Shown: positions 2,040-57,222 of the stretch, piece by piece
Layout of the letters: the number at the start of each line of letters is the position of its first letter
Numbering within the stretch: the first letter of the stretch is position 1
Assembly (NCBI GenBank): GCA_029953675.1
Contig: JAMWBK010000011.1
Location: 558,001 to 622,000, forward strand
Direction: 5' to 3'
DNA from: Rhodosorus marinus CCMP1338
Lineage: Eukaryota > Plantae > Rhodophyta
Length of the DNA stretch: 64,000 nt
The notes under the pieces: model-generated
Seen by the model: only the letters and a program-made list of their open reading frames with translations
Database searches by the model: none
What the model was told of the DNA's origin: nothing
Program-made: the position numbers and the translations under genes

Positions 2040-2600
2040 GGGTATCACCGACTTGGATTTCTGCGCTCTTTTGATCGTTTAGAACCGAAAATTTCGCCAT
2101 ACGGAACTGGACGCTCGTTGTCCATAGCTCTTCCGTTTGAGAGCGTTCCAACCGGAGGCTTGTTTCATTCACATTTTCTGATTTGAGCGCGTCCCGCTGG
2201 AGGCTCGTCATCTTCAGCTTTTTTATTAGAGAGAGTCCCAACAGTGCTGAATGCCACCAACAACATTGCGATAGAGAGTACAAAGAAGTTCTAGAAAGCT
2301 TCGTCCTTCGAGCCCGGGGTTATTGATGAGGACGGATGCGTGCTTGGCCGGTTTCCAAGAATCTCACGTCTGTAGCAACAGAGTCTTGATGATCATGAGC
2401 TGATACATGCAAATCAGCCAAAGGCGAAAAAGGGTGTTTGGCGAAGCGTTCATGAATCGCCTGTCAAATCCCCAACGGCCCCAGCAAAGCGACGAGCTTC
2501 TCAACCACTATCCCCCCTCGGGGGTTTTTTCCTTTATATTTTAAACCTTTAGTTACTCGGGGCAAATCAATTGGCCCATGTTACCCGTTGAAAGTCATTT
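2040..2600. repeat. Paralogous intergenic spacer block, copy 1 (homologues at about 7330-8010 and 11670-12230)
   Basis: Shared anchors such as cttcgagcccggggttattga, tcacgtct..caa..gagtc, catgagctga.acatg and aattggcccatgtta recur in the same order in all three places. Many indels. Confidence 0.8.
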
Positions 2601-3458
2601 GCGAAAGATTACTAAAAAACCTCCTCGGCTTTTTTGAGCGCCAAAAAGCAGAGGATAATACATACATTTTTCCCTTTTTTTGCACTTTCAAAGGGGAAAA
2701 TGTGGGTACCGAGAAATTTGGTCAATGTTACATTTCCACTTCCAAAACAAACCAAAAAAAGGTGACTGAGAAATGATTTTCTGATATTTTCAGCTTTTCG
2801 GTTGGCCAAATGATTTGATCTAGTTTTAATACCTTTTTGCTGTGGGAAACCACAAAAGGCTGCTTTTTCTCTACTTCAAAGCTTTTTGTTTGCATGAAAT
2901 TGCGAAACGCCACAAAATAGTGGTTGGGGCCGGGTTGGGATTGGATCGACCTAGAAGGCTTTTGGTTTGGGACGGTGAATCGGGGACTCAAAGGTGTTAG
3001 GAATTTTGGAGGGTAGGTACCGACAGCGGTGCAGATATGAATAGCTGGTGGAGATGTATGAAGTAAACGGTGAGGCCAATTCATGGGTTCATGGGGTGTA
3101 ACGTTGGTGTTTTTTATTTCGATCTGTACTACAACCAACCAAAGCGGGTTCGCTCAGAGAAAACAGTAGGACCTCAGTTCACCTCAAAAGTCCGTGTTCG
3201 TATCCTCTTCACGCTACCTGTAATTCCCCGATGGCTCTACTCAGAGCTCGAGCATCTCCGGTCTTTGCTGCTTTCCCCCATCGCAGATGCCATGCCGGTG
3301 TAAGAAATATGTTACAAAACACGGAGCTTTCGGGATTCGTCGACGGTTCACTCTCCTGATCACATCCTTTTCAATCAATGACAAGGGCGGAGGTGACATG
3401 CGAATTTCTACGCCGGTCGCTTAAATTTAACCTTGACTGCCGCATATCTAATGCGCAC

Positions 3459-5099
3459 CTAGCTTTCCTCGGGTTCTGGTACGTAGTCATGTTTAGTGTC
3501 ATAAACCGCAAACGTATCCAGAACCGCTGTTAAACGATCTCGATCGTCTCGGAGTTCTTGCGGTGCTTCCTCCCAGTTTGTGATCATAGGGTAGCTGTCC
3601 AAGTCCCGTTTCTCATTCGACACGTCGTACCATCTCTCTCCGCCATCCTTCATCACATGCGAACCTCTAATGAGCTGCTTGTGACCACTTGATCTTGTCT
3701 GATACGAAAAGTTGTACTCGCGGGTGTGATTTTCCGCCTCCCCAAACAGGTACGGATACAGGCTTTGGCCATGCAGTTCGTATCCCTCCAAAAGGTTACT
3801 GACTCCCATCAGGTCCGCCACCGTCGGTACGATGTCAACGAAAGATACGAACTCGTTCGACCTCCCCTGCTTTGTCATATTCATCCCAGGCGCATAAATG
3901 AACATTGGTACGTGCGGACCCCTTTGCTTTTTCCTCGAGTCCTTGCCGTAGCCCTTGGTGCCGTTGTCTGTCGAGAAAATGATCACCGTATTGTCAAGAA
4001 CCCCGAGTTCTTTGCACTTTTCCACATACTGCCAAATCGTGTAGTCGAGGTACTCGACGTGACGCCGAACCCCGCCATTGTTGATCCCCCTCGTCGTGTA
4101 GTTTCCTGCCTGCCCCGTTATCACTGGCTTTTGCTTTGAGTACTTCTCCTTTGCAGCGTTCCACCGCAGCTTTGGAGTAGGTGGCCATGTATCAACCTGT
4201 TGGTTGATAAAGTCGTATGCTTTATGTCCGATTCTGGAAGTTGCGTACAGGAAGAAAGGTCTATCCTCCTCCGCACATGTTTCCATGAACTGCTTCGTCA
4301 CCGCCATGTCTACGTCAGGACCGAAGGTTCCTTTTCTGTATGCCTGTTCAGTCTCCTCCGTATTCGGATAGTAGACCAATTGCTCGTCCTCGTTTGGAGG
4401 ATTGAACAGCAGTACATGCGGCCGCCAGGTGTAGCTACGCTGAGCTCTAGCTCCTGGTTCTACCTCGCCGGTGTCCTGGTTCACGAAAATCTTGTTACCA
4501 TCCTCGTCCTCTCCCGCTCCGACAATTTGAAAGTCTGACAGAGGACTGGGCGGGAGCTCCTGTGGAGCTGGAACGAAAACACCTTGTCCAAACCCGAACT
4601 TGTCCAGGTTGTCCGCGTCCTTCATCCCTGCTCTTCCTCCCCAAAACGTCCCATACCCAGCAGCCGTTGCCAGATGCCCAATTCCCAGCGGAGACGTGAT
4701 CCAAAGAGGAACGATATCACCGACTTCCCCGTTTTCATCAATCCACGACCCGTAATCAAAATTGTACCACCACTTGGTAATCGTTGCGTACCTCCCAGTC
4801 ATCAGCATGCCTCGACTTGACGCGCAAATCGGCGTAGCCCATGCCTTATCGAAGAAGATCCCCTCCCTCGCAATTTTATCCAGCATCGGCGTCCTCGCTC
4901 GAAATTTGACCTGATCCGTGGGCTCTTCGTCCGTACTGGACCAGACACCAGTATCGTACGACGGAAACTCCCTCGGGCTAAGATCATCTCCAATCAAGAC
5001 AATAATATTAGGTCTACCCGACGCTGCCCCATTCGCTCCATACAGCACAGCGCAGCTCCACACCACAAACAACCCCAAAGCAACTCCAACTCCCTTCAT
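3459..5099 (-). CDS. Secreted S1-family sulfatase, clade A copy A2 (546 aa, intronless)
   Basis: True ATG at 5099 (MKGVGVALG signal peptide); the ORF-track extension is 5' UTR. Motifs NIIVLIGDD, TPICASSRGMLMTGRY, FFLY..IGH, NTVIIFSTDNG, HVPMFIYAPG, DIVPTVADL. Confidence 0.93.
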   Translation of the reverse strand: MKGVGVALGLFVVWSCAVLYGANGAASGRPNIIVLIGDDLSPREFPSYDTGVWSSTDEEPTDQVKFRARTPMLDKIAREGIFFDKAWATPICASSRGMLMTGRYATITKWWYNFDYGSWIDENGEVGDIVPLWITSPLGIGHLATAAGYGTFWGGRAGMKDADNLDKFGFGQGVFVPAPQELPPSPLSDFQIVGAGEDEDGNKIFVNQDTGEVEPGARAQRSYTWRPHVLLFNPPNEDEQLVYYPNTEETEQAYRKGTFGPDVDMAVTKQFMETCAEEDRPFFLYATSRIGHKAYDFINQQVDTWPPTPKLRWNAAKEKYSKQKPVITGQAGNYTTRGINNGGVRRHVEYLDYTIWQYVEKCKELGVLDNTVIIFSTDNGTKGYGKDSRKKQRGPHVPMFIYAPGMNMTKQGRSNEFVSFVDIVPTVADLMGVSNLLEGYELHGQSLYPYLFGEAENHTREYNFSYQTRSSGHKQLIRGSHVMKDGGERWYDVSNEKRDLDSYPMITNWEEAPQELRDDRDRLTAVLDTFAVYDTKHDYVPEPEES

Positions 5100-5199
5100 C
5101 GTGCAGAACAACAAAAAAAAGCCTCCCTGATCCTCACTCCATCGACACACCCGCTCTGCTCCCCCACCTAATTTTCAGATCTCCACACAACTGAGTCAC

Positions 5200-7329: not shown

Positions 7330-8010
7330 CAGAGCAAAAACTTTGCTTACGAAGGTCCGGTATCTCGCCGACTTGGCTTTCTGCGTTCTTTTGATGTGTT
7401 GTTTAGTTCCGAAACGGTCGCGAAATAGAAACTGGAGGCTCACTGTCTTTAGCTTTTGGATTTGAGATGGAGGCGCCCTCGCCCATCAGCGTCCAAAATT
7501 TGTAATGAAAGTATACTGGTATTTACATTGTCCAAGGTGGCTGGCTGAGTTTGCTTTTTATGCAGATGGCTGATTTGAGTAGGTCGGGGCAATAGCAATC
7601 GGATTTTGGGTGGAATTTCCAAAAAAAATTGAGCGAAAGAGTGAAAGTTGGTTCGCTCCTGACAGAGCAAAAGTTTTCTTATCAAGGGCCGGTATCGTCG
7701 TCTTCAGCTTTTTTCATTGTGAGAGCGTCACAACAGTGCTGAACGCACCGAATAACATTGGGATAAGGCTCTTCAGAACTTGGTCCTTCGAGCCCGGAGT
7801 TATTGAAGAGGACGGATTCGTGCTTAGCCCGTTACAAGTAGCTCACGTCTCTAACAATCGAGTCCTGACATGAGCTGAGACATGAACATCCGACAAGGAC
7901 GAAAAATTTGTTTGGCCAAGCGTGAATGGACCGCATGGCGATCCCCTACAGCCCCGTAAGGGACGAACTTTTCAACCGCGGGGCAAAGCAATTGGCTCGG
8001 CCCATGTTAC
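7330..8010. repeat. Paralogous intergenic spacer block, copy 2
   Basis: Same anchors as 2040-2600. Homology continues to the sulfatase stop (aatcaatgacaagggcggaggtgacatgcgaatttct at about 3372 and 8845). Confidence 0.8.
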
Positions 8011-8930
8011 TTGTTGAAAGTCGTTTGCCAGAGATTCTAAAACTCATAAACTTTTTTGCGGGCCCAAACATGCACGTTTAATTCCCATTTTTTCACATTT
8101 CCAGGAAGAAAATACCTTCACAATTCTGGTCAATGTTCCACTTGAGCTGAAAACATTAAAACAAAAAAGAAATGATGAGCAAGAAAATCATTTTCTGATA
8201 TTTTCAGGCTTTCGTTCTGGCCTAATGATTTGGTATAATTTAATTCCTTTTTTGCCGACGATGGGAAGAATTGACCAATGGGGATGGTACTCTGTCATCA
8301 CCAAGTCTGCTTTTTCTCTGCCTTAAACTTTTTGTTTGCATGAAATACAAACGTCACAAAACAGTACTTCAGGGTTGGTTGGGGTTGGAGGGGGAGGGAG
8401 GGATTGGACTGGTCGACCTTGCAGGCTTTTGGCTTCGGTGAATCGGGACTCACAGTTGGAGGGTGAGCTACTTATCAGCACCGATAGGGTTTCAGATATG
8501 AATACCCGGTGGAGACGTAAACAGTGCGGCAAACTCGTGCGGTCATGGCGGTGTAATGGGGTTTTTGATGTCGATCTGTCCTCCAAGCAACCAAATAGGG
8601 TTGGCCCAGAGCAAACGAGCTAGGTACAAGAGGTGCTAGCACCTCTAGATTCACCTCTTGGTCCCGCGTTTCTATCCTCTTCAGGCTACCCGTAATCCCT
8701 TGAGGCCTCTATCACAGCTGGCGGGCATGGCCGGTCTTGTTGCTTTCGTCCGTCGTAGATGACATCCCGGCGTAAGAAAGATGGTACAAAGCACGACGCT
8801 TTCGGGATTCGTCGACGGTCCACTCTCCTGATCACGTCCTTGTCAATCAATGACAAGGGCGGAGGTGACATGCGAATTTCTTTGCCGTTCGTTAATATTT
8901 AATCTTGACTGCCGCATGTCTAATGCACAC

Positions 8931-10571
8931 CTAGCTTTCCTCGGGTTCTGGGACGTAGTCATGTTCCGTGTCATAAACCGCAAACGTATCTAAAACCGCT
9001 GTTAAACGATCTCGATCGTCTCGGAGTTCTTGCGGTGCTTCCTCCCAGTTTGTGATCTTTGGGTAGCTGTCCAAGTCCCGTTTTTCATTTGACACGTCGT
9101 ACCATCTCTCTCCGCCATCCTTCATCACATGCGAACCTCTGATAAGCTGCTTGTGACCATTTGATCTTGTCTGATACGAAAAGTTGTACTCGCGGGTGTG
9201 ATTTTCCGCCTCCCCAAACAGGTACGGATACAGGCTTTGGCCATGCAATTCGTATCCATCCAAAAGGTCACTAACTCCCATCAGGTCCGCCACCGTAGGT
9301 ACGATGTCAACGAAAGAGACGAACTCGTTCGACCTCCCTTGCTTTGTCATATTCATCCCAGGCGCATAAATGAACATTGGCACGTGTGGACCCCTTTGCT
9401 TGTTCCTCGAGTCCTTGCCGTAGCCCTTGGTGCCGTTGTCTGTCGAGAAAATGATCACCGTATTGTCAAGAACCCCGAGTTCTTTGCACTTTTCCACATA
9501 CTGCCAAATCGTGTAGTCGAGGTACTCGACGTGACGTCTAACTCCGCCTTTGTTGATCCCCTTCGTCGTGTAGTTTCCTGCCTCCCCCATTATCACTGAC
9601 TGTTGCTTTCTGTACTTCTGCTTGTTGGGATTGAACCATAGCTTTGGAGTGGGTGGCCATGTATCAACCTGTTGGTTGATGAAGTCGTATGCTTTATGTC
9701 CGATTCTGGAGGTTGCATAGAGGAAGAAAGGCTTCTCCTCGTCAGCGCAGGTTTCCATGAACTGCTTCGTCACTTCCATATCCACGTCGGGACCGTACGT
9801 CCCCTTCCCGTACGCAGCTTTTGTCTCCTCCGTATTCGGGTAGTAGACCAATTGCTCGTCCTCGTTTGGAGGATTGAACAGCAGTACGTGCGGTCGCCAG
9901 GTGTAGCTACGTTGAGCTCTAGCTCCTGGTTCTACCTTGCCGGTGTCCTTGTTCACGAATATCTTGTTACCATCCTCGTCCACTCCCGCTCCGACAATTT
10001 GAAAGTCTGACAGAGGACTGGGCGGGAGCTCCTGTGGAGCTGGAACGAAAACACCTTGTCCAAACCCGAACTTGTCCAGGTTGTCCGCGTCCTTCATCCC
10101 TGCTCTTCCTCCCCAAAACGTACCATACCCAGCAGCCGTTGCCAGATGTGCAATTCCCAGCGGAGATGTGATCCATAGAGGAACGATATCACCGACTTCC
10201 CCGTTTTCATCAATCCACGACCCGTAATCAAAATTGTACCACCACTTGGTAATCGTTGCGTACCTCCCAGTCATCAGCATGCCTCGACTTGACGCGCAAA
10301 TCGGCGTAGCCCATGCCTTATCGAAGAAGATCCCCTCCCTCGCAATCTTATCCAGCATCGGCGTCTTCGCTCGAAATTTGACCTGATCCGTGGGCTCTTC
10401 GTCTGTACTGGACCATACACCGGTATCGTACGACGGAAACTCCCTCGGGCTCAGATCATCTCCAATCAAGACAATAATGTTAGGCTTCCCCGACGCCGCA
10501 CCATCCGCTCCATGCAGCACGGCGCAGCTCAACACCACGAACAATCCAAATGCAGCTCCAACGCCCTTCAT
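8931..10571 (-). CDS. Secreted S1-family sulfatase, clade A copy A3 (546 aa, intronless)
   Basis: ATG at 10571 (MKGVGAAFG). Same length and motifs as A2, and near-identical protein. Confidence 0.93.
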   Translation of the reverse strand: MKGVGAAFGLFVVLSCAVLHGADGAASGKPNIIVLIGDDLSPREFPSYDTGVWSSTDEEPTDQVKFRAKTPMLDKIAREGIFFDKAWATPICASSRGMLMTGRYATITKWWYNFDYGSWIDENGEVGDIVPLWITSPLGIAHLATAAGYGTFWGGRAGMKDADNLDKFGFGQGVFVPAPQELPPSPLSDFQIVGAGVDEDGNKIFVNKDTGKVEPGARAQRSYTWRPHVLLFNPPNEDEQLVYYPNTEETKAAYGKGTYGPDVDMEVTKQFMETCADEEKPFFLYATSRIGHKAYDFINQQVDTWPPTPKLWFNPNKQKYRKQQSVIMGEAGNYTTKGINKGGVRRHVEYLDYTIWQYVEKCKELGVLDNTVIIFSTDNGTKGYGKDSRNKQRGPHVPMFIYAPGMNMTKQGRSNEFVSFVDIVPTVADLMGVSDLLDGYELHGQSLYPYLFGEAENHTREYNFSYQTRSNGHKQLIRGSHVMKDGGERWYDVSNEKRDLDSYPKITNWEEAPQELRDDRDRLTAVLDTFAVYDTEHDYVPEPEES

Positions 10572-11669
10572 CGTGCTTAAAAAAAAAACAAACCTCCCGA
10601 TCCTAACTCCATCGACATCCGCTTCCTCCCCGCCCCCACCGACATTGATGGTCACCCGCATCCGAATCACATGTACAAATATATACACTACCCTCCCCCG
10701 ATGACCCTCAACCCAATCAAAACAAAAAGCCAATGCCCCCCTAACCCCCTTCCCCCTGGAAAACTGAAAATAGTCATAGATTGTGTTCGTCGTAACGATC
10801 CTGAACCCAAACAAAGAAAACCCAAACCCCCTAACCAACCCCTCCCCCTCGCGCGAACGGAAGACTAGTAACGGAAACATTGTTTCCTCGTATTGAATTA
10901 TGGAGTTTTAAACCAGATCGAACAAGAATCCATCGGCATAGCATTTACCAAGAAACCGTTTTTTGTTTTTTTTCATACTCCTCCAGCTCTCTCTCTCTCT
11001 CTCTGTCTCTGTTTCTCTCTCCCTCCGCTCGTATCTGTTTTTTTGTTTGCAGTCACAACAAGACAAGAGAAACAAAAATCAAAAAAAAAAAGGTCTAGAG
11101 AGCGGAAACAGTCTACCTGTCATGGCGGGTGATGTCTGTCCGCAAGTCCTTAATATATCTAAAAAACATTGTAGTGGTGTTCAACCTGTCACGCGTCCAA
11201 GTGACAAGTACGTAATATATCGAAATTTTACGTAGTAGCCTAACACACGTTTCGTCGGCTGTAATTCACGATTCGTTCATGGCCTTCATAAACGAACTTG
11301 TGACATAACGGGAGGGATGATTAAATGGGACCTGGCGGGGCCATGTTGGGCCTTGTAGAAATATTGGAAAACAATGATATGCGATGTCGTTGTTTTTTTG
11401 TAAACGGCGGGGGTGTGGGGGGAAGGCTGAGGTTGTTGCGGGATTGTGAAAAGGCTAACGCGAAAGGTGTCGTTTGGTAGGAGGCTTTTCTGATGATGAG
11501 ATAGGTTTTTTGGGGGGGACGCGGGAAAGTTTGATGGAGATGTACGTAGCGTTGATTGGTCTGCGGTGTGAGCTTCGTCGCTTTTTCTTTCGTTTTTTTG
11601 GTGAGGTGTGGCCATGGCAGACTTTTGGATTGGTGTGTGGTTCTTGAGTGAAAGTTGGCTTGCTCTTGT

Positions 11670-14264: not shown

Positions 14265-15905
14265 TTAGTTCGCTATGGGGTCGTAGTCATGTTCGGTCTC
14301 GTAGACGTCGAATTCATCCAAGACCTTGGATAATTCATCCCGTTCATCACGGAGCTCTTTCGGTACTTTGTTCCAGTTTGTGATTCTAGGGTAACTGTCC
14401 AAGTCCCGTTTCTCATTCGACACGTCGTACCATCTGTCCCCGCCATCCTTCATCACGTACGAACCTCTGATTAACTGTTTGTGACCGGTCGATCTGGTCT
14501 GATACGAAAAGTTGTACTCGCGAGTGTGTTGTTTTGCGCCCCTGAACAAGTACTTATACAGACTTTGACCATGCAGCTCGTATCCATCCAGAAGGTAACT
14601 AACCCCCATCAGGTCCGCCACCGTCGGTACGATGTCAACGAAAGATACGAACTCGTTCGACCTCCCTTGCTTTGTCATATTCATCCCAGGCGCATAAATG
14701 AACATTGGTACGTGCGGACCCCTTTGCTTTTTCCTCGAGTCCTTGCCGTAGCCCTTGGTGCCGTTGTCTGTCGAGAAAATGATCACCGTATTGTCAAGAA
14801 CCCCGAGTTCTTTGCACTTTTCCACGTACTGCCAAATCGTGTAGTCGAGGTACTCGACGTGACGCCGAACCCCGCCATTGTTGATCCCCCTCGTCGTGTA
14901 GTTTCCTGCCTGCCCCGTTATCACTGGCTCTTGCTTTGAGTACGTCTCCTTTGCAGCGTTCCACCACAGCTTTGGAGTAGGTGGCCATGTATCAGTCTCT
15001 TGGTTGATAAAGTCGTATGCTTTATGTCCGATTCTGGAAGTTGCGTACAGGAAGAAAGGTCTATCCTCCTCCGCACATGTTTCCATGAACTGCGTCGTCA
15101 CCGCCATGTCTACGTCAGGACCGAAGGTTCCTTTGCTGTATGCCTGTTCAGTCTCCTCCGTATTCGGATAGTAGACCAATTGCTCGTCCTCGTTTGGAGG
15201 ATTGAACAGCAGTACATGCGGCCGCCAGGTGTAGCTACGCTGAGCTCTAGCTCCTGGTTCTACCATGCCGGTGTCCTTGTTCACGAATATCTTGTTACCA
15301 TCCTCGTCCACTCCCGCTCCGACAATTTGAAAGTCTGACAGAGGACTAGGCGGGAGCTCCTGTGGAGCTGGAACGAAAACACCTTGTCCAAACCCGAACT
15401 TGTCCAGGTTGTCCGCGTCCTTCATCCCTGCTCTTCCTCCCCAAAACGTACCATACCCAGCAGCCGTTGCCAGATGTGCAATTCCCAGCGGAGATGTGAT
15501 CCATAGAGGAACGATATCACCGACTTTCCCGTTTTCGTCAGTCCACGACCCGTAATCAAAATTGTACCACCACTTGGTAATCGTTGCGTACCTCCCAGTC
15601 ATCAGCATGCCTCGACTTGACGCGCAAATCGGTGTAGCCCATGCCTTATCGAAGAAGATCCCCTCCCTCGCAATCTTATCCAGCATCGGCGTCCTCGCTC
15701 GAAATTTGACCTGATCCGTGGGCTCTTCGTCTGTACTAGACCAGACACCAGTATCGTACGACGGGAACTCCCTCGGGCTGAGGTCATCGCCAATCAAGAC
15801 AATAATATTAGGTTTTGTGCGCGACTTTGCGCCATCCGCACCAGACAAAACAGCGCAATACAGCACCATGAACAGTCCCACAGAAAGCCCAACAACCCCC
15901 TTCAT
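14265..15905 (-). CDS. Secreted S1-family sulfatase, clade A copy A4 (546 aa, intronless)
   Basis: ATG at 15905 (MKGVVGLSVG). CASSR motif; divergent C-terminus (HDYDPIAN). Confidence 0.93.
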   Translation of the reverse strand: MKGVVGLSVGLFMVLYCAVLSGADGAKSRTKPNIIVLIGDDLSPREFPSYDTGVWSSTDEEPTDQVKFRARTPMLDKIAREGIFFDKAWATPICASSRGMLMTGRYATITKWWYNFDYGSWTDENGKVGDIVPLWITSPLGIAHLATAAGYGTFWGGRAGMKDADNLDKFGFGQGVFVPAPQELPPSPLSDFQIVGAGVDEDGNKIFVNKDTGMVEPGARAQRSYTWRPHVLLFNPPNEDEQLVYYPNTEETEQAYSKGTFGPDVDMAVTTQFMETCAEEDRPFFLYATSRIGHKAYDFINQETDTWPPTPKLWWNAAKETYSKQEPVITGQAGNYTTRGINNGGVRRHVEYLDYTIWQYVEKCKELGVLDNTVIIFSTDNGTKGYGKDSRKKQRGPHVPMFIYAPGMNMTKQGRSNEFVSFVDIVPTVADLMGVSYLLDGYELHGQSLYKYLFRGAKQHTREYNFSYQTRSTGHKQLIRGSYVMKDGGDRWYDVSNEKRDLDSYPRITNWNKVPKELRDERDELSKVLDEFDVYETEHDYDPIAN

Positions 15906-19712: not shown

Positions 19713-20273
19713 CAACCGCACTCTTTGCGAGCTCCAAATCCAGAACTGCTCAGACAGAGATGGTGCATCAAAGCGCTAATACTCCACAACCCGAGCTGGA
19801 AGCATTCAGAACTTGGCTGGTCAGTTTAAAACCTACACTATGGGTTGCGATTGGCGGGTAAAGACACGTGGTGTATATATGTTGAAATACTTCACAACAG
19901 TCAACTTATTATTGGCTATTATACGACATATTGGACATGTGTCAGGAAGTATGGGTGTGTACGTCGCAGTCTGCGACCAATAAAAGTGTAGATATGGCGC
20001 CGAAAGAGGAGATGCTGGTTGACCTGGAAGGGATGCTCAACTTCGTCGGAGAGGTGGCTGCCCGAGTTGTCAATGCTCTTTCAAGCAGGAGGAACGGAGG
20101 GCGAGTGGGGGAGGGAGCTAGAAGGGTTCATCTACGACGACAAAGTCAAACAGATGGAGCGGACCTGAGTGACCCGCTTGGCCTGAGGAAACGGCCTATT
20201 TGTGTGGTTGACTTTGACAGTTCGGTTCGGGCACCCTCCGTTCGGGAGTAGTGACCGCTTCATCGTAAGAGGC

Positions 20274-21248
20274 ATGGGCACTGGGGGAGACCTGGATGAC
20301 CCCCCTCGTAAAACAGAAGAGGAAGAACTAGAGCAGTTGACTGGATGTATAAGAGATTATTGTGGAGTGATTGACTTGAAGATTCTCGGTAAACGGGAGG
20401 AGTTGCTGGATGCGCCCGAGGTGGGGAGTGCGCTAACTCCTGAGGTGAAAGCGACGCTGATGAGCAAGGTTGATGAGCTGGAGCAGCGACGTTTTTTACT
20501 CAAGATTCCTCATCGAGTGTTGCACGGGTTTTTGGATCTCATCATTGTAAACGTGCTCCGTATCTTGTACGTGATTCTCAGTTTCTTTCTCTGGATAGGA
20601 TCCTGTTTCCGTCCTAGATCGAAATCGAGTGATCGCTCTGATGCGTTTGACTTGGATGCTTTCGATGGATTTTATTCAGAGTTGTTGACCTGGGGTGCGA
20701 CTGCCGTGTCTGTGGCGAGCGGAATAGTCGTTCTCTTGTCGCTTCTCGCTGGGAATCCGTCTAGAAGCAGAGTCATCGTAATTTCGTTCTCCGCTACAAT
20801 GGGAGCTTTGACCCTGTTAAATCGCATGTATTTGAGGGGGAAAGCACTCGAAACGTCTTTCATCAAGTTTTCAAAAGCACTCCTGATTATCCAGATTGGT
20901 ATCTTCGAGTTGAGGAAGGCACAGCTGATTTCGCAGCCATTGTCCCAAGGTCAGAGCCACATTATCAACGGCTACATAAACTCGGTGGAAAAATGCATGA
21001 AGTTCGCAGTGGCTCAGATAAAACACTACAGCTTCCTCTCGCCGATTCACCGTGTCTTGTTTCTTGGTGGGCGCCAAGTGTCAGACTTAGACTCTCTCTC
21101 CAACTACAACGTGAGGCTCGGCAAAAGCGTTCAAGCGATGGGTTTTCTTCGGGACCGGTTTATGGACGCCCAGATACTGGCTACCATAGTTCCAAACTCG
21201 GTTGTAGACAGGATTCGAGGCGACGTCGCAATCAACAATGGCAACTGA
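20274..21248 (+). CDS. Orphan membrane protein with about 3 TM helices, paralog 1 (324 aa from the first plausible ATG)
   Basis: Long intronless ORF with three hydrophobic segments. Conserved in frame with the paralog at 22786-23751, with many synonymous differences. Confidence 0.75.
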   Translation: MGTGGDLDDPPRKTEEEELEQLTGCIRDYCGVIDLKILGKREELLDAPEVGSALTPEVKATLMSKVDELEQRRFLLKIPHRVLHGFLDLIIVNVLRILYVILSFFLWIGSCFRPRSKSSDRSDAFDLDAFDGFYSELLTWGATAVSVASGIVVLLSLLAGNPSRSRVIVISFSATMGALTLLNRMYLRGKALETSFIKFSKALLIIQIGIFELRKAQLISQPLSQGQSHIINGYINSVEKCMKFAVAQIKHYSFLSPIHRVLFLGGRQVSDLDSLSNYNVRLGKSVQAMGFLRDRFMDAQILATIVPNSVVDRIRGDVAINNGN

Positions 21249-21689
21249 GCAGGAGCGAGCTCCCGTTGACAAAGAGAAAAGGCAGGGGGCCCACGTTGTG
21301 CACGGATTCTCAACAACATAGTAAGCGGGCCCCGCCACTCTAAAAGGATAGAATACCGTACGGCTATGGAAGTCGCCTCAAGTGCTTGGGCTTGACATTG
21401 TAGCTTTCCTGACGTACGCCATATACAGACGCGCTCGTTTCACCGTCAGTATTGAAACTAGAAACTTTTTCCCAGCGTTGACCTGAAGGCTTCGCTACGG
21501 GGTACTGGGACTAACATATCCGGTGGGGCAAGGAGCTCTACGGCTGTGCTCCTCTGTGTTCCTTTGCCGAACAACGGGCTGAAGTCATCACTTTGATGAA
21601 AGACGAAGTTTTGGCGATCACCGACCGCTGGGTTCCCTCGGCGATTGCGCGAAAGCCCCAGCTCAAATATATTCATGTTCTCTGAACCG

Positions 21690-22440: not shown

Positions 22441-22785
22441 ACACAAAAAGGCACGTCTACTGTCAACGAGAGTTTTACCTCCCCAAAACCTGAAGGCCCA
22501 AACTCTGCAAGTCTAATGTTACCTAACGTCCTGGTATGTTACTCACCCGGTTGGGATGCGTGACTTGGTCGGGGTGGTGTCTGGCAGAGTTGTCAATGCT
22601 CTTGAAAGCAAGGGGCAGCGGCGGGGGGAGGGGGAAAGAAGAGCTCGTCTATGACAAAGAAGTCAAATCACCTGGAGTAGACCTGATTGATCTGCTGGCC
22701 TGAGGAAACGGGCCGATTATGTGTTGTTGACTTTGACAGTTCGGGATTCTGTTCTGGAAATTCGCGCGCGTCCTGGTCGGCAGGG

Positions 22786-23751
22786 ATGGACACTGCTGGG
22801 GTGTGGTTGACACCCCCTCCTCAAACGGAGGAGGAAGAACTGGATCAGTTAACCCTATGTATAAGAGATTATTGTGGAGAGATTGACTTGAAGATTCTCG
22901 GGAAACGGGAGGACTTAACAGCTACTCCCGAGGTGGGAACTGCGGTAACTCCTGAAGTAAAAGCGATGCTGATGAGCAAGGTTGATGAGCTGGAGCAGCG
23001 AACTGTTGTACCCAAGGTCCTTCATCGAGTGTTGCACGGGTTTTTGGACCTTATCGTTTCAAACGTTCTCCGGGTCACGTACATGATCCTTAGCTTCTTT
23101 CGGTGGATAGGGTCCTGTTTCGGCGGTAGCTCGAAGTCGAGTGATAGCACTGATGTGTTTGATTTGGATGCTCTTGATAATTTTTATACGGAGTTGTTGA
23201 CCTGGGGTACTGCTGCGGTATCTGTGGCGTACGCAATAGTGCTCCTCAAATCTCTTCTCGCCGGGACTCCTAGGCGAAGCCTTGTCATCGTCATAATATT
23301 CGCGGCTGTAATGGGAAGTTTAGTCCTGTTGTTGTTTATGTATGCGAGGGGGAAAGCGCTCGAGACGTCCTTCATCAAGTATGCAAAAACGTTGCTGATT
23401 AACCAGATTGGTATCTTCGAAATGAGGACGGCGCAGCTGGTTTCGCAGCCATTGCCCCAAGGTCAGAACCGAGTGATCAATGGGTACATAAACTCTGTGG
23501 AAATCTGCCTGAGGTTCGCAGTGTCTCAGATCAAACACTATGCTTTCCTCGCGCCGTTGGACCGGGTCTTATTTGTTGGTGGGCGCCACCTGTCAGACTT
23601 GAACTCTCTTTCTAACTACGACGTGAGGCTCGGCAAAGCAGTTCAGACGATGGAATTTCTTCGGGAGCGTTTCATGGACGCCCATATATTAGGAGCAATA
23701 GCTGGAGCCTCCAAGCGAAAAAAGATTCCAGCCGAGCTTGCTACCAACTAA
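22786..23751 (+). CDS. Orphan membrane protein with about 3 TM helices, paralog 2 (321 aa)
   Basis: Aligns end to end with 20274-21248 (e.g. CIRDYCG.IDLKILGKRE, GKALETSFIK, NGYINSVE, LSNY.VRLGK). Flanking DNA is duplicated too. Confidence 0.75.
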   Translation: MDTAGVWLTPPPQTEEEELDQLTLCIRDYCGEIDLKILGKREDLTATPEVGTAVTPEVKAMLMSKVDELEQRTVVPKVLHRVLHGFLDLIVSNVLRVTYMILSFFRWIGSCFGGSSKSSDSTDVFDLDALDNFYTELLTWGTAAVSVAYAIVLLKSLLAGTPRRSLVIVIIFAAVMGSLVLLLFMYARGKALETSFIKYAKTLLINQIGIFEMRTAQLVSQPLPQGQNRVINGYINSVEICLRFAVSQIKHYAFLAPLDRVLFVGGRHLSDLNSLSNYDVRLGKAVQTMEFLRERFMDAHILGAIAGASKRKKIPAELATN

Positions 23752-25307
23752 GGCAACTGAGTGAAAACGGTCCTGCTGACGATAAAACAGCTCGTTCAAA
23801 TCGGAGGGTCAGCTTCTGCGCAGATTCTCAACAATATGATATGCGCACCGCACAACTCGAAAAAGCGGAGAATCGCATACAGCAACAGAACGCTTGGCGT
23901 GCTTGGGCTTGACCACGTGCGGTGGGTTTTCTGCAGCACGCCATAGACAAAACCCACCCCCTCGTTTCTTGCTCAGTATTGAAACAAGGAGAAATAACCA
24001 ACAGCTTCCGTAAGGTGGACACTAGGAATAGCATGTGGGACAAGTAGCCCTAACGCTCTCACCCTCTGTGTTCCCCTTGCCGAACAGCGAGTTGAAATCA
24101 TCACTTAAACTAAAGAAGGCATTTCTAATCGTAAGTTATAGAACGAAAATTTGCCGCTTGATCTCTCCAAGTAAATTTTCTGTAGCACTTGTGGGCCCTT
24201 CGAGGATCGCCGATGCCTTCATAAAACTCGGAGTCATAGACTCCAGCATCTCTCCTGGGGCCCCGACGATGTGCGAACTCTGCCCGTGGTTATCAGTGGG
24301 CCCGACCTGATTTCACTCTGCGGTCTGTTCAGGAAACTCGATTTATTGTTCTTTTTCGGCACTTCTTTCCCGCACACCATTGAAACTCCTGATCTCAGGA
24401 AATTCCCAAAGGTCTCGGGCACCTTCTCTTGACACCCTCATGATGTCCCTATTTGAAAAGTCCTCAGATATCCTCAATTTGAGAACTTCTCCTTCCACCC
24501 CGGCCACCTAGAAGCTCACCAGCGTATAATGCAGCGCCCCCGGAGCGCCTCTAACGACGGCTCCTGGTGAATCGCTCGAGCTCAGGTAGCGCTCAATGAC
24601 TCACCACCGCGGTTCAGAAAGGGCGCAAACATAAACCACCTTTCCAGCAGCCCACTCTAAATCCAATCCCCTCACACACTGCTAAAGCGTACACCTGTTG
24701 CGTAATCGCGATTGCCGCAAGAGTAAAACAACTGAGCTTGAAGAATCAACGACCACCAGACAAAGCAGCCCTGGCGTTCATGCGGCGCTCCTCTCGCGGG
24801 TGTAGGTTCAGTTGCTGAAGACTACATTGCTTTACGCCGGTCTTCTTGGCCTACTACTAATCATTAATCATGTCCGGTGTCGCGGCATGCTATACAGTAT
24901 ATACAACCTGCTAGCTTACATCTAGGATATACTGTAGACGGTCAAGCGCATGATCAAAACATTGCCATGACTCAAATCCTTTGATGATTCCCATTCACTC
25001 TGTGATCGTTCAAACCTGGATATCGGTCGCGTATCGTACGGTGCGGTCAAGTCCAGGAGGTTGTTGTATTACGTGAATTTCGACACCAACCCCCCTCGAC
25101 AGAAAAAGGCGCTATAACCATGTTCATGAGCTCAAAGATTTCAAAATCGAATACTGTACACCACCTTCGCTCGAAAAACAATACCTGACGGCCGCGTCAT
25201 CCTACCCGCCCTCCATTAGCAAAATCGCGTCCCAGCAATCGCCATCAAACACAACGAAGACAAAAAGCTTTTCCAGGACAGCTCCCATCGCGGCGGCATC
25301 CATTACA

Positions 25308-27015: not shown

Positions 27016-28608
27016 TCAAATGTAGTCATGTGCTGTGTCGTAGACATCGTACTTTCGCATGATCCGGATCAAATTGTCCCTCTCCCGTCGGAAACGAGGT
27101 GGAAGTGCACTCCAGTTTGTGATTGGAGGGTACGAGTCATAGTCTTCGACTTCATTATCAACCCTCCACCAGCTCCTGTTCCCGTCTCGCATCACCAGCC
27201 TTCCTCGGATCATTTGAATATCTCGGATGTATGCATACGCCATAATTCGATGTCGACGTTTCGAAGTCGTCAGGTACGGCCACAGGTTTAATCCGTGTCT
27301 CTTGTACTTCACAGGTTGTTCAATCACGTCCTCAGCTCCCATGATGTCAGCCAGTGTTGGCAGCATATCTACCACATGCACCAACTCCTCCTGTCTTCCT
27401 TGCTTTGTCAGTTCCATCCCAGGAGCGTACACCACAAAAGGCACGTGAGGTCCCTTCTGCCTTTCACTACTACCTTTTCCCCACTCTGTAGTCCCGTTGT
27501 CAGAAGCGAAGATGATGATCGTGTTATCCATGATCCCCAACTCCTTCAGGTGTTCTACATATTGCCACAACATGTAGTCCACATATTCAATATGTCGATA
27601 CAATCCTCCGTCGTTGATCCCCTCCGTTTCGTAAACCCCCGCGCTACCTGTGATGGTGACCTCTGACCTTGTGTACGAACGCGTTTCCTCGTCCCAAGTT
27701 AGCTTAGGAGTTGGTGGGTAGTCATTTCCTTTTTCCGGTTGTATAAAGTTAAAGGCTTTATGGCCAAGCTTCGAATTGTGGAAGATGAAGAACGGCTTAT
27801 CCTCGTCATTGCTTCTCGTTATGAAATCTATTATCGACTCGCTCTCCACGTCCGGTCCGTACGTAGAAAGTCCATACTCTGCACGGAGCTCATCAGTGTG
27901 CGGCCAGTACGTGAAGTCCTCCGTCGTTCCGGGGAAGTTCATCAGGTCAATATGTGGCTTCCAGAAGAAACTTCGCTGGGTACCAATGGAAATTTCCTCA
28001 CCAGTGTCCACGTTGATCCTCACTCGCTCACCGTTCCTTGTCGACCACCTGATTCTAAATTCCGGCGAGTACGGGCTCGGAGGTTTGAAGGCCGCGTTCG
28101 GCAAAAATACTCCCTCATCAAATCCAAACTCCCGTAGGTCCGCCGTCTTCATTCCTGGCTTCCCCGCCCACATCGTCTTGTACCCAGCCTGCTGCGCCAA
28201 GTGCCCTACAAGAATCGGCGACGTCAGATACAGAGGAACGAAATCCTCTGTCTCACCTTGCGCGTTTGTGAACGTTCCATAATCCCTGTTGTACCACCAT
28301 TTCGTTAGGCTCGCGAATCGGCCCGTCAACAACATCGCCCGGCTTGGTGAGCAAATCGGAGCCGCCCATGCCTTGGTAAAGTACGCTCCATCCCTTGCAA
28401 ACATATCCAGCATTGGCGTTTTCGCTCGCAAGCTCTCGTTGCTTGACTCAATATTCTTACCACCAACCCACCTCGGGGCGTTGTAGAACCCCAGTTCCCG
28501 CGGACTAACATCGTCGATGTACATGAGCAATATGTTCGGCTTGGTTGCCTGCGCCGCCGTCTCGGACAGCCCAGACAACAAGAGACACACCAGCACAGCT
28601 GCAATCAT
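27016..28608 (-). CDS. Secreted S1-family sulfatase, clade B copy B1 (530 aa, intronless)
   Basis: ATG at 28608 gives the signal peptide MIAAVLVCLLLSGLSETAAQA. Motifs NILLMYIDD, APICSPSRAMLLTGRF, AGKPG, FHNSKLGH, ASDNG. Confidence 0.92.
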   Translation of the reverse strand: MIAAVLVCLLLSGLSETAAQATKPNILLMYIDDVSPRELGFYNAPRWVGGKNIESSNESLRAKTPMLDMFARDGAYFTKAWAAPICSPSRAMLLTGRFASLTKWWYNRDYGTFTNAQGETEDFVPLYLTSPILVGHLAQQAGYKTMWAGKPGMKTADLREFGFDEGVFLPNAAFKPPSPYSPEFRIRWSTRNGERVRINVDTGEEISIGTQRSFFWKPHIDLMNFPGTTEDFTYWPHTDELRAEYGLSTYGPDVESESIIDFITRSNDEDKPFFIFHNSKLGHKAFNFIQPEKGNDYPPTPKLTWDEETRSYTRSEVTITGSAGVYETEGINDGGLYRHIEYVDYMLWQYVEHLKELGIMDNTIIIFASDNGTTEWGKGSSERQKGPHVPFVVYAPGMELTKQGRQEELVHVVDMLPTLADIMGAEDVIEQPVKYKRHGLNLWPYLTTSKRRHRIMAYAYIRDIQMIRGRLVMRDGNRSWWRVDNEVEDYDSYPPITNWSALPPRFRRERDNLIRIMRKYDVYDTAHDYI

Positions 28609-30895: not shown

Positions 30896-32506
30896 TCAAA
30901 TATAGTCATGCTCTGTCTCATAGAGGTCAAATCTGCCCATGATCCTAATCAAATTGTCCCTCTCCACTCCGAATTCTGCCGGTAGAGCGTCCCAGTCTGT
31001 GATTAGTGGGTATGAGTCGTAGTCTTCAACCTCCTCGTCAACCTTCCACCAGTCGTTGTTCATATCCCGCATCACAAGCTTTCCTCGAATCTGTTGCAAT
31101 TCCTTAATGTAGGAATAGAGATATCCCCGATGCCTGGGCTTGGCTGTTATCAGGTACGGCCACAGATTTTTGCCTTGTTTCGAGTATCCATCAAGCAAGT
31201 GCTCAACTCCCATGATGTCAGCAAACGTTGGCAGCATATCGACTACATGCACCAGCACGTCCTGTCTTCCCTGCTTTGCAAGATTCATCCCAGGAGCGTA
31301 GATCACCATCGGAACGTGAGGGCCCCTCTGCCTTACACGACTGCCCTTACCCCAAAATGGAGTCCCATTGTCAGAAGCGAAGATTATGATAGTGTTGTTC
31401 ATGATCCCCAAGTCCTTCAAGTGCTCCACATACTGCCACAGCATGTAGTCGCAATACTCAATGTGTCGATTCAAGCCTCCGTTGTTGATCCCCTCCGTTT
31501 CGTAGACGCCATTGCTCCCAGTGATGGTGACGTCTAGGCGGTTGTACTTTTGTTTTTTCTCATTCCAATATAGCTTAGGTGTTGGCGGATAGCTGCTTCC
31601 CTTCTCAGGTTGGATGAAGTTGAAGGCTATGTGCCCCAGTTTCGAGTTGTGGAAGACGAAGAAAGGCTTTTCCTCCTCGTGGCTTCTTGTCATGAAGTTT
31701 ATAATAGACTCGCTCTCCACGTCCGGTCCGTACGTGGCAAGTCCATACTCAGCCTGAAGCTCAGCCGTGTGGGGCCAGTACGTGAAGTCCTCCGTCGTTC
31801 CGGGGAAGTTCATCAGGTCTATGTGTGGCTTCCAGAAGTAACTTCGCTCGCGTCCAACGTTTACAATCTTCCCAGTGTCATTGTTAACGTTCACAGTCTT
31901 TCCGTCCCGGACCTCTTTCTTGATTACGAACTCAGGAGAGTACGGTGTGGGAGGGTCAAACGCCGCATTTGGCAAGAATACACCCTCATCAAAACCAAAC
32001 TCTCGCAGGTCCGCCGTCTTCATTCCGGGCTTCCCAGCCCACATCGTCTTGTACCCAGCCTGCTGAGCCAGGTGCCCTACAAGTATAGGGGACGTCAGAT
32101 ACAGGGGAACGAAGTCTTCAGTCTCACCATCAGCGTTAGTGAAGGTTCCATAGTCCCTGTTGTACCACCATTTCGTTATATGAGCGAATCGGCCGGTCAA
32201 GAACATGGCCCTACTCGGGGAACAAACCGGAGCTGCCCAAACCTTGGTGAAATACATTCCCTCTCGCGACATCATGTCCAGCATCGGAGTTTTCGCGCGA
32301 AATCTCTCCTCATCGGACTCGACAGTTTTCTTACCAACCCAGGTGGGGGCGTCGTACATCCTCAGCTCCCTCGGGCTGACATCATCCACGTACATAAACA
32401 AGATGTTCGGCTTGGTAGCCTGAGCATCTGCACCGGACCGACCCAAGCACCACAGCACACACAACAGTGCATATGCAAACATGCTCAAAAACCGACCTGC
32501 AGACAT
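30896..32506 (-). CDS. Secreted S1-family sulfatase, clade B copy B2 (536 aa from ATG 32506; alternative ATG 32482)
   Basis: Signal peptide ...MFAYALLCVLWCLGRSGADAQA; motifs NILFMYVDD, APVCSPSRAMFLTGRF, AGKPG, ASDNG. Confidence 0.92.
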   Translation of the reverse strand: MSAGRFLSMFAYALLCVLWCLGRSGADAQATKPNILFMYVDDVSPRELRMYDAPTWVGKKTVESDEERFRAKTPMLDMMSREGMYFTKVWAAPVCSPSRAMFLTGRFAHITKWWYNRDYGTFTNADGETEDFVPLYLTSPILVGHLAQQAGYKTMWAGKPGMKTADLREFGFDEGVFLPNAAFDPPTPYSPEFVIKKEVRDGKTVNVNNDTGKIVNVGRERSYFWKPHIDLMNFPGTTEDFTYWPHTAELQAEYGLATYGPDVESESIINFMTRSHEEEKPFFVFHNSKLGHIAFNFIQPEKGSSYPPTPKLYWNEKKQKYNRLDVTITGSNGVYETEGINNGGLNRHIEYCDYMLWQYVEHLKDLGIMNNTIIIFASDNGTPFWGKGSRVRQRGPHVPMVIYAPGMNLAKQGRQDVLVHVVDMLPTFADIMGVEHLLDGYSKQGKNLWPYLITAKPRHRGYLYSYIKELQQIRGKLVMRDMNNDWWKVDEEVEDYDSYPLITDWDALPAEFGVERDNLIRIMGRFDLYETEHDYI

Positions 32507-34675: not shown

Positions 34676-36243
34676 ATGTTTCCACCTGTTCTGGTGGTCC
34701 CGTTGTAGTGCTTGGGCAAGTCCGCAGCAGCTGCCCAGTAAGCCAAGCCGAACGTCCTGTTTATATACATTGATGACAACAGTAACGGTGAACTGCGGGT
34801 GGGCGGTCGTAGATCCGCGGTGGAAAGATCAATTCCGTGAACGAGAAGTTCCACCCGAAGACCCCCATAGTCTCTATGCTCGCACGAGATGGAGTTTACT
34901 TCACCAAGGCGGGGGCAGCTTCGGCGTGTTCTCCGAGTCGGGCCATGTTCTCAACCGGCCGATATGCGAGGCTGACGACGTCGTGGTACAACGGGGATTA
35001 TGGAACCTTCACAAACCGTGAGGGTGAAACTGAGGGCCACGTTCCCCTGTAATTGGCGCCCTGTTACTTGTAGAGCACGTCGCTCAACAAGCTGGGTACA
35101 AAACGTTGTGGACTGAGAAGCCCAGAATGAAGACGCGGACCTGAGCGAGTTTGGATTTGGTGCGGGCTTATTCCTGCCAAAGGCGGCGTTCAAACTCCCA
35201 GCCCGTACAGCCCGGAGTTTGTAATCAGGTCAAGGATTGTGAATGGCAAAACGGAGAATTTCAATGTCGACACCGGGGAGAAAGTGAGCCCCGGAGGCGA
35301 GCGAAGTTACTTCTAGAAGCCGCACATCGACCTGATAAACTTCTCAGGAGCTACCCAGGACTTCACGTACTGGCCGCACGCGGAAGAGCTCCAGGTTGAG
35401 TATGGGTGTTCTACATACGGTCCGGACGTGGAGAGCGAATCTATCATATATTTCATGACGAAAAGCCATGAGGATGAAAAGACGTTCTTCATCTTCCATA
35501 AATCGAAACTAGTGCACATAGCATTCAAAACTTTATCCAACCTGACCAGGGAACGAGCTATCCTCCAACACCTGAGCTAACTTGGGACGAAGCCACACAG
35601 GCATACACGCGCAGAAGTCACCGTCGCAGGTGGCAATGGCGTTTACGAAACGGAGGGGATCAACGACGGAGGCTTCCATCGACACTTGGATTGCGTCGAC
35701 TACATGACATGGCAATATGTAGAACACATGAAGGACTTGGGGGTCATGGACAACACCATCATCATCCTCGCTTCTGACAACGGGACTACACACTGGGGTA
35801 AGGCCCGTAGGTCAAAGCAGAGCGGCACTAGCATCCCGATGGTCATCTACGTCGTGGGATGCAACTCACAAAGCAAGGAAGATTGGACGTGATGGTGCAT
35901 GTGGTAGATATGCTGCCAACGTTTGCCGACATCATGGGAGCTAAGGACTTACTTGAACAGTCATTGAAGTAAAAGAGACACGGTGGCCGTACCTGACTAC
36001 GACCAAAACTACACATCGAATCGTGCCGTACTCGTACCTTCGCGATCTCCAAATCATCCGAGGAAAGCTCGTGATGCGAGATGCTAACGAGAACTGGAGG
36101 AAGGTTAACGAGGAAGTCAATGACTATGACTCGTACCCACAGATCACAGACCGGAGCACCCTTGCAGCCAAATACCGAACCGAGAGGGACAGTCTCGTAC
36201 GAATCATGTACGGGTCTATGAGACCGAACGTGATTATGTCTGA
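34676..36243 (+). pseudogene. Inverted, degraded clade B sulfatase pseudogene (B2-like)
   Basis: Collinear homology from MFPPVLVVPL*CLGKSAAAAQ*AKPNVLFIYIDD through ACSPSRAMFSTGRY and NTIIILASDNG to YETERDYV*. Multiple stops and frameshifts. Confidence 0.93.
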
Positions 36244-55902: not shown

Positions 55903-56453
55903 ATGAGAATCGTTGGAATTTCTGGATCTCTGCGTCGGGCGTCCGCGAACTCTGGATTGCTGAGGGTCGCCCGGGAGCTGTCGCCGCCTGATGTGGAATT
56001 TGTGATCGCCGATATTTCTAGGCTTCCGCTGCTGAACCAGGACCTGGAGAAGCCTAGTCCACCGAAGGAGGTGGTTGAAGTCAAGGACGTCGTCGCGACT
56101 GCGGATGCTATCTTCCTTGCGGTTCCCGAGTACAACTTCCGATGACCGCGGCTATGAAGAACGCGATCGACTGGGCCTCGAGACCTCCCAATGTGCTCGA
56201 CAGCAAGCCTTTCGCAATGGGAAGCTGTGCAGGTGGGGCAGGTGGCGCACATGCACAGCTCGCGGTCAGAAACGCTGCCGTTTTCGCGAACATGCACGCG
56301 ATGAACAAGCCCCCACTGAGCTTCAAGCTCTTCGACGGGTCTGTTTCCTGGGACTTGGAAACTGGCGATATCACGGACGAGAAAGCACGAGAGAGGATCA
56401 GGGCACAAGTTGTGGCGCTAGTCGCCTTTGCTGAAGAGTTTCATAAACCATAG
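55903..56453 (+). pseudogene. NADPH-dependent FMN reductase (flavodoxin-like) with a single 1-nt deletion; pseudogene or assembly indel
   Basis: GISGSLRRASANSGL...PEYNF in one frame and MTAAMKNAIDW... in the -1 frame (AAC TTC CG ATG versus AAC TTT TCC ATG in the paralog). Otherwise intact. Confidence 0.8.
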
Positions 56454-57222
56454 AGTAGTTCGATGCCACACATTTGCTCCTCTTCCTCTAAAGACCTGAC
56501 GTTGCTTTTGTCCCGATACGCAGTCCTTGGTCACTCTGAAACTTAAAAACGATCTGCAGAAACGGGAGGGTTCTGGTGCTGAAGTTCAAACCGCCAGAAC
56601 AGGGCTCAGTGCATCAACGACCTGAGCCGATACGCAGCTCCTTCGCGATCACTGATCGGCGGATCGCGTGCGGGTTCGGCTATCGAGCATCAGTTGTTAT
56701 TGAAGTGCCGAAGCTAAGGGCAACTCAAGAGTGTGCAGATATAGCGCTCATGTCACAAGCGATCCGATCTGCAATGCAGATTCTCTCGCTCAATGCTTCA
56801 ACCTCACATGAGTTACAGTTTTCTGGCCAGTCCAGCCTGATCAGTTTGCAAACACACTGTCAGAACTATCTTACGGGAGCTAGTCCCCAGACTGGGATTC
56901 CCGAGAAGTGGGGGTGATCAATTTAGCGGCCACGAGGACGACAAAAAACTCGAGCTCCGTTCCTCTTCTCTGTCGATTCTAAATAAAGCCTCTCCATCAG
57001 TAAGACTAATCACTGTCAACTAGGTGGCGATATGATGAGTCCAGCAGACGCTTTAGCTCCCATCGGCTGCTCTACTGATCAATCAGTTCGGATTGTACGA
57101 GTGACCCGCTCAGAGGATCAGGCGGCCGGAGATCTTCCGTGATCGGTGCTTTTGGAAGGTGCAAAGGGTTTAGTCATAGTGGAGTTCCGTGCGGGCCCCG
57201 ATACAACCGAAGAACGGAAATT

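Follow-up and report, generated by a model that had tools for sequence, protein, structure and literature searches.

One clade of a tandemly amplified sulfatase family in the red alga Rhodosorus marinus CCMP1338 carries serine or alanine in place of the proline of the formylglycine motif, and we put at roughly 50% the probability that its members are active, diverged, secreted enzymes tolerating a small residue at this position (+2 relative to the catalytic cysteine). Cys92 would then still be converted, perhaps less efficiently. Most of the genes in question lie within a stretch of 64,000 nt (contig JAMWBK010000011.1 of assembly GCA_029953675.1, positions 558,001 to 622,000 of the forward strand), referred to here as the window. 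Its minus strand harbors seven genes that are free of introns and belong to a single sulfatase family (PF00884); they split into four genes of clade A, with the motif TPICASSRG, and three of clade B, with P[IV]CSPSRA. C-x-P-x-R is commonly regarded as the code that directs formylglycine formation and serves as the ‘aldehyde tag’; clade A offers a natural test of how strict its +2 position is. The two clades form a matched pair—same host, same fold, 47% identity, one of them canonical—with which maturation and activity can readily be compared.

A small residue at +2 is maintained in clade A

An original prediction, made from the letters of the window alone, had contrasted TPICASSRG in the four genes A1 to A4 with CSPSR in clade B. 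Six-frame translation of the window, searched for PICASSR and P-[IV]-C-S-P-S-R, bore this out, as did the bases themselves, which at 4812-4832 of A1 read CCG ATT TGC GCG TCA AGT CGA on the minus strand. All full-length copies in the window scored 98-104 bits with PF00884, for which the cut-off is 25, with A1 reaching 98.2 bits and spanning profile positions 1-301 of 301.

The same prediction held the serine to be fixed across four intact paralogs. For the window this stands: every clade A copy has Ser, and A4, of which the first ~95 codons fall inside the window, is intact in the contig as a whole gene of 544 aa (10001-11635 of L001, a stretch of the same contig that reaches past the window). 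Genome-wide, however, Ser is not fixed. A sixth clade A gene, A6 (NDN08_000996; contig JAMWBK010000006.1), is intact and reads CAASR, as do transcripts or proteins of other Rhodosorus strains; among transcript-derived proteins of those strains, CASSR occurs in P0004 and P0006 and CAASR in P0002.

Because the paralogs share common ancestry, four copies with one motif do not amount to independent evidence, and we examined how the motif had been kept. PICASSRGM is identical across two deep subclades of clade A, with synonymous differences in 6 of its 9 codons; the +2 serine itself is written TCA in A1-A3 and TCC in A4-A5. A6 stands next to A3 in the tree at a synonymous divergence (dS) of 0.21, and its +2 codon, GCA (Ala), is one step from TCA, as is the clade B proline codon (CCA or CCG). 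Between A1-A3/A6 and A4-A5, dS amounted to 1.07-1.23 and the ratio of nonsynonymous to synonymous divergence (dN/dS) to 0.13-0.16 (Nei-Gojobori). Since the motif has been kept over a dS of 1.1-1.2, with Ser and Ala alternating, clade A requires a small residue at +2, and its genes, which are transcribed, have kept one for a long time.

Several further observations bear on whether these genes are maintained. Within clade A, dN/dS ranged from 0.13 to 0.35, and within clade B from 0.16 to 0.18 (same method). All six clade A reading frames are intact, at 544-553 codons, and clade A transcripts are known from other Rhodosorus strains (MMETSP/EukProt). Unconstrained copies of both clades in the same genome have acquired stops and frameshifts: the dead copy beside A6 has lost one base within the Cys codon of its CAASR, which shifts the frame and is followed by 16 stops, and a clade B-like pseudogene in the window shares 73-75% DNA identity with B1 and B2. 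Judged from these sequence features, clade A is not decaying but old, under purifying selection and expressed. As Tajima relative-rate tests of clade A against clade B were mostly non-significant, its history looks like a few targeted changes that were then frozen rather than fast drift.

Clade A has altered canonical active-site positions

In an alignment of 30 sequences, the metal ligands D38 D39 and D378 N379 were invariant, in agreement with the earlier claim that the DD and DN ligands are retained. C92 and R96 of the motif were likewise invariant, as were H292 (..IGHK..) and K386 (..GYGK..), the equivalents of His211 and Lys375 in AtsA. The auxiliary xTGR motif is kept as MTGR in clade A and as LTGR in clade B. 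Of 128 columns conserved in the bacterial relatives and all of clade B, clade A has changed 11; clade B has changed 9 family-conserved columns, none of them at a canonical catalytic position.

The clade A changes include P94, the +2 proline of C-x-P-x-R, which became Ser or Ala; with Ser, the motif falls outside the updated PS00523 pattern (PMC5066984), which takes Pro (or Ala) here. They also include K156, the lysine of G-Y-x-T-x3-G-K (AtsA Lys113 / ARSA Lys123), a residue that binds sulfate and the formylglycine hydrate. Clade A reads GYGTFWGGR, with Arg (AGA) at position 156 where clade B has Lys (AAG) and every aligned bacterial relative has Lys as well. We assigned this position by exact motif spacing and by the strand 150-155 that precedes R156 in a predicted model. 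Finally, H286, a family-invariant histidine in the strand leading to His292, is Ala in clade A.

Two residues past the catalytic lysine, AtsA has His115, which has been proposed to act as the base when sulfate is eliminated. Both Rhodosorus clades have Gly at this position and most bacterial relatives Gln; as the whole family is without the histidine, its loss is not a peculiarity of clade A. Across S1 sulfatases, the position is conserved in 81% (PMC5066984). It is a guess on our part that the family's His286, Ala in clade A, might stand in for the missing His115.

An AlphaFold2 model of A1 (mean predicted local distance difference test, pLDDT, 89.4; predicted template-modelling score 0.90) placed C92 at the start of a helix (92-101), the location known from S1 sulfatases of solved structure. 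When this model was submitted to Foldseek, all 50 of the listed PDB matches were S1 sulfatases (probability 1.00, template-modelling (TM) score 0.5-0.68), the top one being human arylsulfatase A (TM 0.58/0.65). A beta-rich insertion at about residues 180-340 was unmatched in solved structures. At the N-terminus, ahead of the conserved domain, the model shows a hydrophobic, signal-like helix (residues 5-20) of low pLDDT.

Serine at +2 is rare but recurrent

The original prediction had further described the clade A motif as non-canonical, and published counts concur: among 4058 S1 sulfatases, Pro makes up 87% of the +2 residues and Ala 9% (369 sequences), while every other residue—Ser first in the list, also Thr and Val—accounts for less than 1% (PMC5066984, text and S1A Fig). 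Among 268 proteins that we fetched for comparison, +2 was P in 215, A in 22, V in 10, S in 8 and T in 6. Genuine serines outside Rhodosorus were found in P0131 (CSSSR), P0150 (CQSTR) and P0171 (CTSTR, on a contig of 8.26 Mb). P0131 belongs to the same family as the Rhodosorus clades, though on a bacterial branch of its own in the neighbor-joining tree. CxSxR is thus rare, at about 1%, yet has arisen repeatedly and independently in bacteria.

By the terms of the original prediction, its reading would have been refuted had CxSxR been common in the nearest active homologues. Among the nearest homologues sampled, every clade B protein carries Pro, and the bacterial S1 family combines CxPxR with Lys, the one exception found being P0131, which has kept the Lys. 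The exchange of this Lys for Arg is likewise rare but recurrent: it is on record in CxPxR sulfatases, in 61 of the 4058 (PMC5066984), and four CxPxR proteins of our 268 show it too (P0149, P0163, P0168 and P0214).

The family is nested among marine bacterial sulfatases

In a protein search of which the best 120 matches were listed, the only relatives above ~45% identity were Rhodosorus proteins; next came full-length bacterial proteins at 40-44%, such as those of Mariniblastus fucicola (P0011), Pontiella agarivorans (P0013) and Coraliomargarita akajimensis (P0018). The bacterial relatives stem from marine Planctomycetota, Verrucomicrobiota (Coraliomargarita, Lentimonas), Kiritimatiellota (Pontiella) and Paraglaciecola, and have a KWW motif, a C-terminal HD motif and insertions in common with the Rhodosorus clades. 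In a neighbor-joining tree over 517 columns, clade A, clade B and A+B were each recovered in 100 of 100 bootstraps, with A and B as sisters and A+B nested within the bacterial family. The simplest history that these sequences suggest is one transfer from marine bacteria into the Rhodosorus lineage, followed by the A/B duplication and then by tandem amplification.

Each of the 15 bacterial sequences in the alignment, like every clade B protein, had Pro at +2 and Lys at the equivalent of position 156. Because of this distribution, the change from Pro to Ser is placed on the clade A stem, after the A/B duplication. The loci of the bacterial relatives also contain other sulfatases, GH43/GH28 glycosidases, uronate-pathway enzymes and beta-helix lyase-like proteins, and on account of these gene neighborhoods the family is most aptly viewed as one of carbohydrate sulfatases from loci for polysaccharide degradation. 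The bacterial origin, the exchanges K156R and H286A, the alternation of Ser and Ala and a host lineage reported to lack both sulfatases and a formylglycine-generating enzyme go beyond what the original prediction, whose caution was warranted, had contained.

A retuned sulfatase as the preferred reading

Along the clade A stem, the active site underwent a retuning in which +2 Pro gave way to Ser (later to Ala in one sub-lineage), Lys to Arg and His to Ala; tandem multiplication has since proceeded under purifying selection. In structural terms, the catalytic helix would accommodate Ser or Ala in its first turn. Cys92 would be converted to formylglycine in the secretory pathway, by a system that may also serve the CSPSR proteins of clade B. 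The paired active-site changes could then mark a shift in substrate or sulfate handling rather than a loss of catalysis, and the likely substrates would be the alga's own sulfated extracellular polysaccharides. That clade A proteins are working enzymes we infer from two considerations: copies that lose function visibly decay in this genome, and the cysteine would be superfluous in a protein that binds but does not catalyze.

Tolerance of a small +2 residue is suggested by the alternation of Ser and Ala, by the recurrence of CxSxR in bacteria and by two known systems, namely diatom sulfatases with Ile or Val and an S1_51 sulfatase with CSASR. Diatom formylglycine sulfatases, with C-(S/W)-(P/I)-x-R and C-(C/W)-(P/V/I)-S-R, are eukaryotic algal S1 enzymes whose +2 residue is not always Pro, and those with Ile or Val coexist with SUMF genes (PMC4659905). 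They differ from clade A in that diatoms have recognizable SUMF genes, in the substituting residues and in belonging to unrelated subfamilies.

Cys-type CxAxR sulfatases, such as Clostridium perfringens CIASR and OpSulf1 (PDB 9FVT, CSASR), resemble clade A in pairing a small non-Pro +2 residue with a retained Cys and Arg, and the CAASR of A6 itself matches the CxAxR pattern. These systems, however, are bacterial and matured by an anaerobic radical-SAM enzyme, whereas clade A resides in an aerobic eukaryote and mostly has Ser (PMC2459300, PMC6189696). The C. perfringens enzyme was partially converted in Escherichia coli alone and fully (100%) with its anSME (PMC6189696). OpSulf1, a mannan sulfatase of subfamily S1_51, is the nearest solved sequence relative, yet a distant one (E 1.8e-16); in the study describing it, sulfatases were produced with a co-expressed plasmid for the formylglycine-generating enzyme (FGE), and an S1_51 enzyme proved active as an endo-6S-mannan sulfatase (PMC13063451).

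Relative to S1/PF00884 enzymes at large (human arylsulfatase A, Pseudomonas aeruginosa AtsA), clade A shares the two-domain alpha/beta fold, a catalytic helix that begins with the Cys, Arg at +4, xTGR, the DD/DN ligands and the equivalents of His211 and Lys375. It departs from the S1 norm in Ser/Ala at +2, Arg at Lys113/Lys123, the beta-rich insertion and Gly at His115/His125, the last of which holds for clade B too.

A number of points weigh against the preferred reading. Purifying selection and residue conservation, as read from these sequences, indicate function, not which function. Clade A, its relatives in clade B and the bacterial family are biochemically uncharacterized throughout, an NCBIfam scan placed zero models above cut-off and so yielded no family-level name, and the nearest solved structures are 14-20% identical to A1. 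The aerobic FGE is described as activating CXPXR, with CXAXR and SXPXR types matured by an anaerobic radical-SAM enzyme (PMC2459300), and the clade A core CASSR departs from the CxPxR core so ascribed to FGE. In iduronate-2-sulfatase (IDS), replacement of the motif Pro by Leu (P86L) destroyed activity in the mouse, and patients with this change are severely affected (PMC10185571). Neither formylglycine sulfatases nor SUMF turned up in a 2015 survey of Chondrus, Porphyridium, Cyanidioschyzon and Galdieria, four red-algal genomes with EgtB-like ‘SUMF-like’ proteins only (PMC4659905); the question of a red-algal FGE bears on clade B as much as on clade A. Finally, a non-Pro +2 residue coupled with Arg for Lys occurred in clade A only among the 268 proteins, and this pairing could signal changed chemistry instead of mere tolerance.

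A crude motif scan (GNxWEW, RxxRGGSW) confined to the window, L001 and L002 (a stretch of contig JAMWBK010000006.1) revealed no FGE-like motif, a result that says little. Literature searches returned no relevant paper joining Rhodosorus with sulfatase, nothing on an ARSB P93S mutation and, for variant tag sequences, unrelated acronyms only.

Alternative explanations

The original prediction had named three options, namely a relaxed host FGE, unmodified Cys-based enzymes and dead binders of sulfated glycans. According to the second, clade A would consist of hydrolases that use the unmodified Cys, the nucleophile being its thiol or else a water bound to the metal, either because loss of the +2 Pro blocks formylglycine formation or because the host never had FGE; Lys to Arg and His to Ala would be adaptations. 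We consider this the main rival, though an unlikely one. Several of the points just listed speak for it: the stated CXPXR specificity of FGE (PMC2459300), the absence of SUMF from the four surveyed red algae (PMC4659905) and the joint change of two canonical positions on the clade A stem, in a pairing unique among the 268 proteins. The strict retention of Cys, which this model requires, fits as well, and there is precedent in the multiple-turnover activity of an unmodified Cys-form choline sulfatase (kcat 0.27 per s) and in an unmodified phosphonate monoester hydrolase that is also active (PMC6189696). Such enzymes are, however, slow, the gain expected from formylglycine over the unmodified forms being 5- to 2500-fold (PMC6189696). 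Clade B, moreover, keeps CSPSR and LTGR under purifying selection, which is hard to explain without a maturation system, and clade A keeps Arg+4 and MTGR, as FGE recognition needs, with the qualification that Arg+4 is also catalytic.

A bolder version would have clade A no longer reliant on canonical formylglycine maturation at all, its members being Cys-type or otherwise matured and remodeling the alga's own polysaccharide. We regard it as quite improbable; if true, clade A would provide the first case of a red alga desulfating with an enzyme of its own, and would show that S1 chemistry independent of FGE occurs in nature. Whatever the mode of maturation, a 2020 paper states that conclusive identification of sulfatases in red algae was still lacking (PMC7359372), and an expanded, expressed and selected S1 family in Rhodosorus makes the question of red-algal matrix remodeling testable.

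The need of red algae for enzymes that remove or rearrange sulfate in their extracellular matrix, together with the lack of a conclusively identified sulfatase to meet it, is also what recommends a different reaction on sulfated galactans (PMC7359372), for instance an intramolecular elimination of sulfate by a ‘sulfurylase’ that forms 3,6-anhydrogalactose, or the hydrolysis of a non-sulfate ester. The clade-specific changes fall on three family-invariant positions, and the S1/alkaline-phosphatase scaffold is promiscuous, phosphonate monoester hydrolases sharing the motif (PMC6189696). Yet the changes are few and conservative, and the sequence points to no specific alternative chemistry, which leaves this explanation very doubtful. 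The finding is a variant inside a well-known enzyme family; new chemistry is not indicated by the evidence here.

The dead binders are the least likely of the three options originally named, and fit our data poorly. As lectin-like, catalytically inert proteins, putatively secreted and present in multiple copies, clade A members might suit a structural or binding role, and the non-canonical motif does coincide with replacement of the catalytic Lys. Yet Cys, Arg, DD, DN and the His211/Lys375 equivalents are all invariant over a dS above 1, although a binder has no use for a nucleophile; the exchange of Lys for Arg is conservative and present in otherwise canonical sulfatases; clade A evolves no faster than clade B; and with its dN/dS as given above it contrasts with the truly dead copies, which carry stops and frameshifts. 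We rate this explanation as more doubtful still. That clade A represents recent duplicates drifting toward pseudogenes, with the motif a mere matter of ancestry, is effectively refuted: the tandem array, close pairs (A4/A5, dS 0.10) and pseudogene copies would fit, but not a dS of 1.1-1.2 between subclades at a dN/dS of about 0.15, nor six intact frames with transcripts in other strains.

Gene inventory of the locus

The sulfatase genes and remnants are listed in Table 1. Starts of neighboring clade A genes are ~5.3-5.5 kb apart. Bacterial contamination was considered as a source of the genes and ruled out, given a contig of 1.44 Mb, the wide gene spacing and transcripts of both clades in the MMETSP data of other strains.

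Table 1 Sulfatase genes, gene remnants and key codons in R. marinus. Positions refer to the window unless L001 or L002 is given.
Feature	Position	Strand	Remarks
A1, clade A sulfatase, 546 aa	3459-5099	minus	ATG at 5097-5099; PICASSR at 4812-4832
A1 motif codons	Cys 4824-4826; +2 Ser (TCA) 4818-4820; Arg 4812-4814	minus	
A1 Arg codon (AGA) replacing catalytic Lys	4632-4634	minus	Equivalent codon in A2, A3 and the L001/L002 copies
A2, clade A sulfatase, 546 aa	8931-10571	minus	CASSR motif at 10284-10304
A3, clade A sulfatase, 546 aa	14265-15905	minus	CASSR motif at 15612-15632
A4, clade A sulfatase, 5' part (cut by window start)	1-287	minus	CASSR at 6-26; Ser codon TCC
B1, clade B sulfatase	27016-28608	minus	CSPSR at 28339-28359; catalytic Lys kept
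B2, clade B sulfatase	30896-32506	minus	CSPSR at 32210-32230
B3, clade B sulfatase	37274-38899	minus	CSPSR at 38612-38632
Clade B-like sulfatase pseudogene	34676-36208	plus	Several in-frame stops; at least 3 frame changes; CSPSR still readable
A5, fifth CASSR copy	L001 18709-20349		Just outside the window
Second clade A locus (contig JAMWBK010000006.1)	L002 10001-11662 and 15904-17360		Intact CAASR copy and adjoining dead copy

The similarity of A1 and A2 runs over a duplication unit (2205-5164 versus 7695-10631) that extends ~1.25 kb past the 3' end of the coding sequence, with 82% identity over 3 kb; similarity of A3 to A1 and A2 is confined to the coding region.

Between the clade A and clade B genes lie two tandem paralogous open reading frames (ORFs) on the plus strand, at 20022-21593 and 22545-24106, of 348 and 354 aa and with 73% DNA identity, whose hydrophobic stretches suggest membrane proteins. 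A Pfam scan of the first of the pair only gave no match. Further along the window, an ORF at 57139-57888 on the plus strand encodes a predicted NADPH-dependent FMN reductase (PF03358, E 1.7e-33), and a stretch of 480 bp located ~1.4 kb upstream (55939-56416) is 69% identical to part of it.

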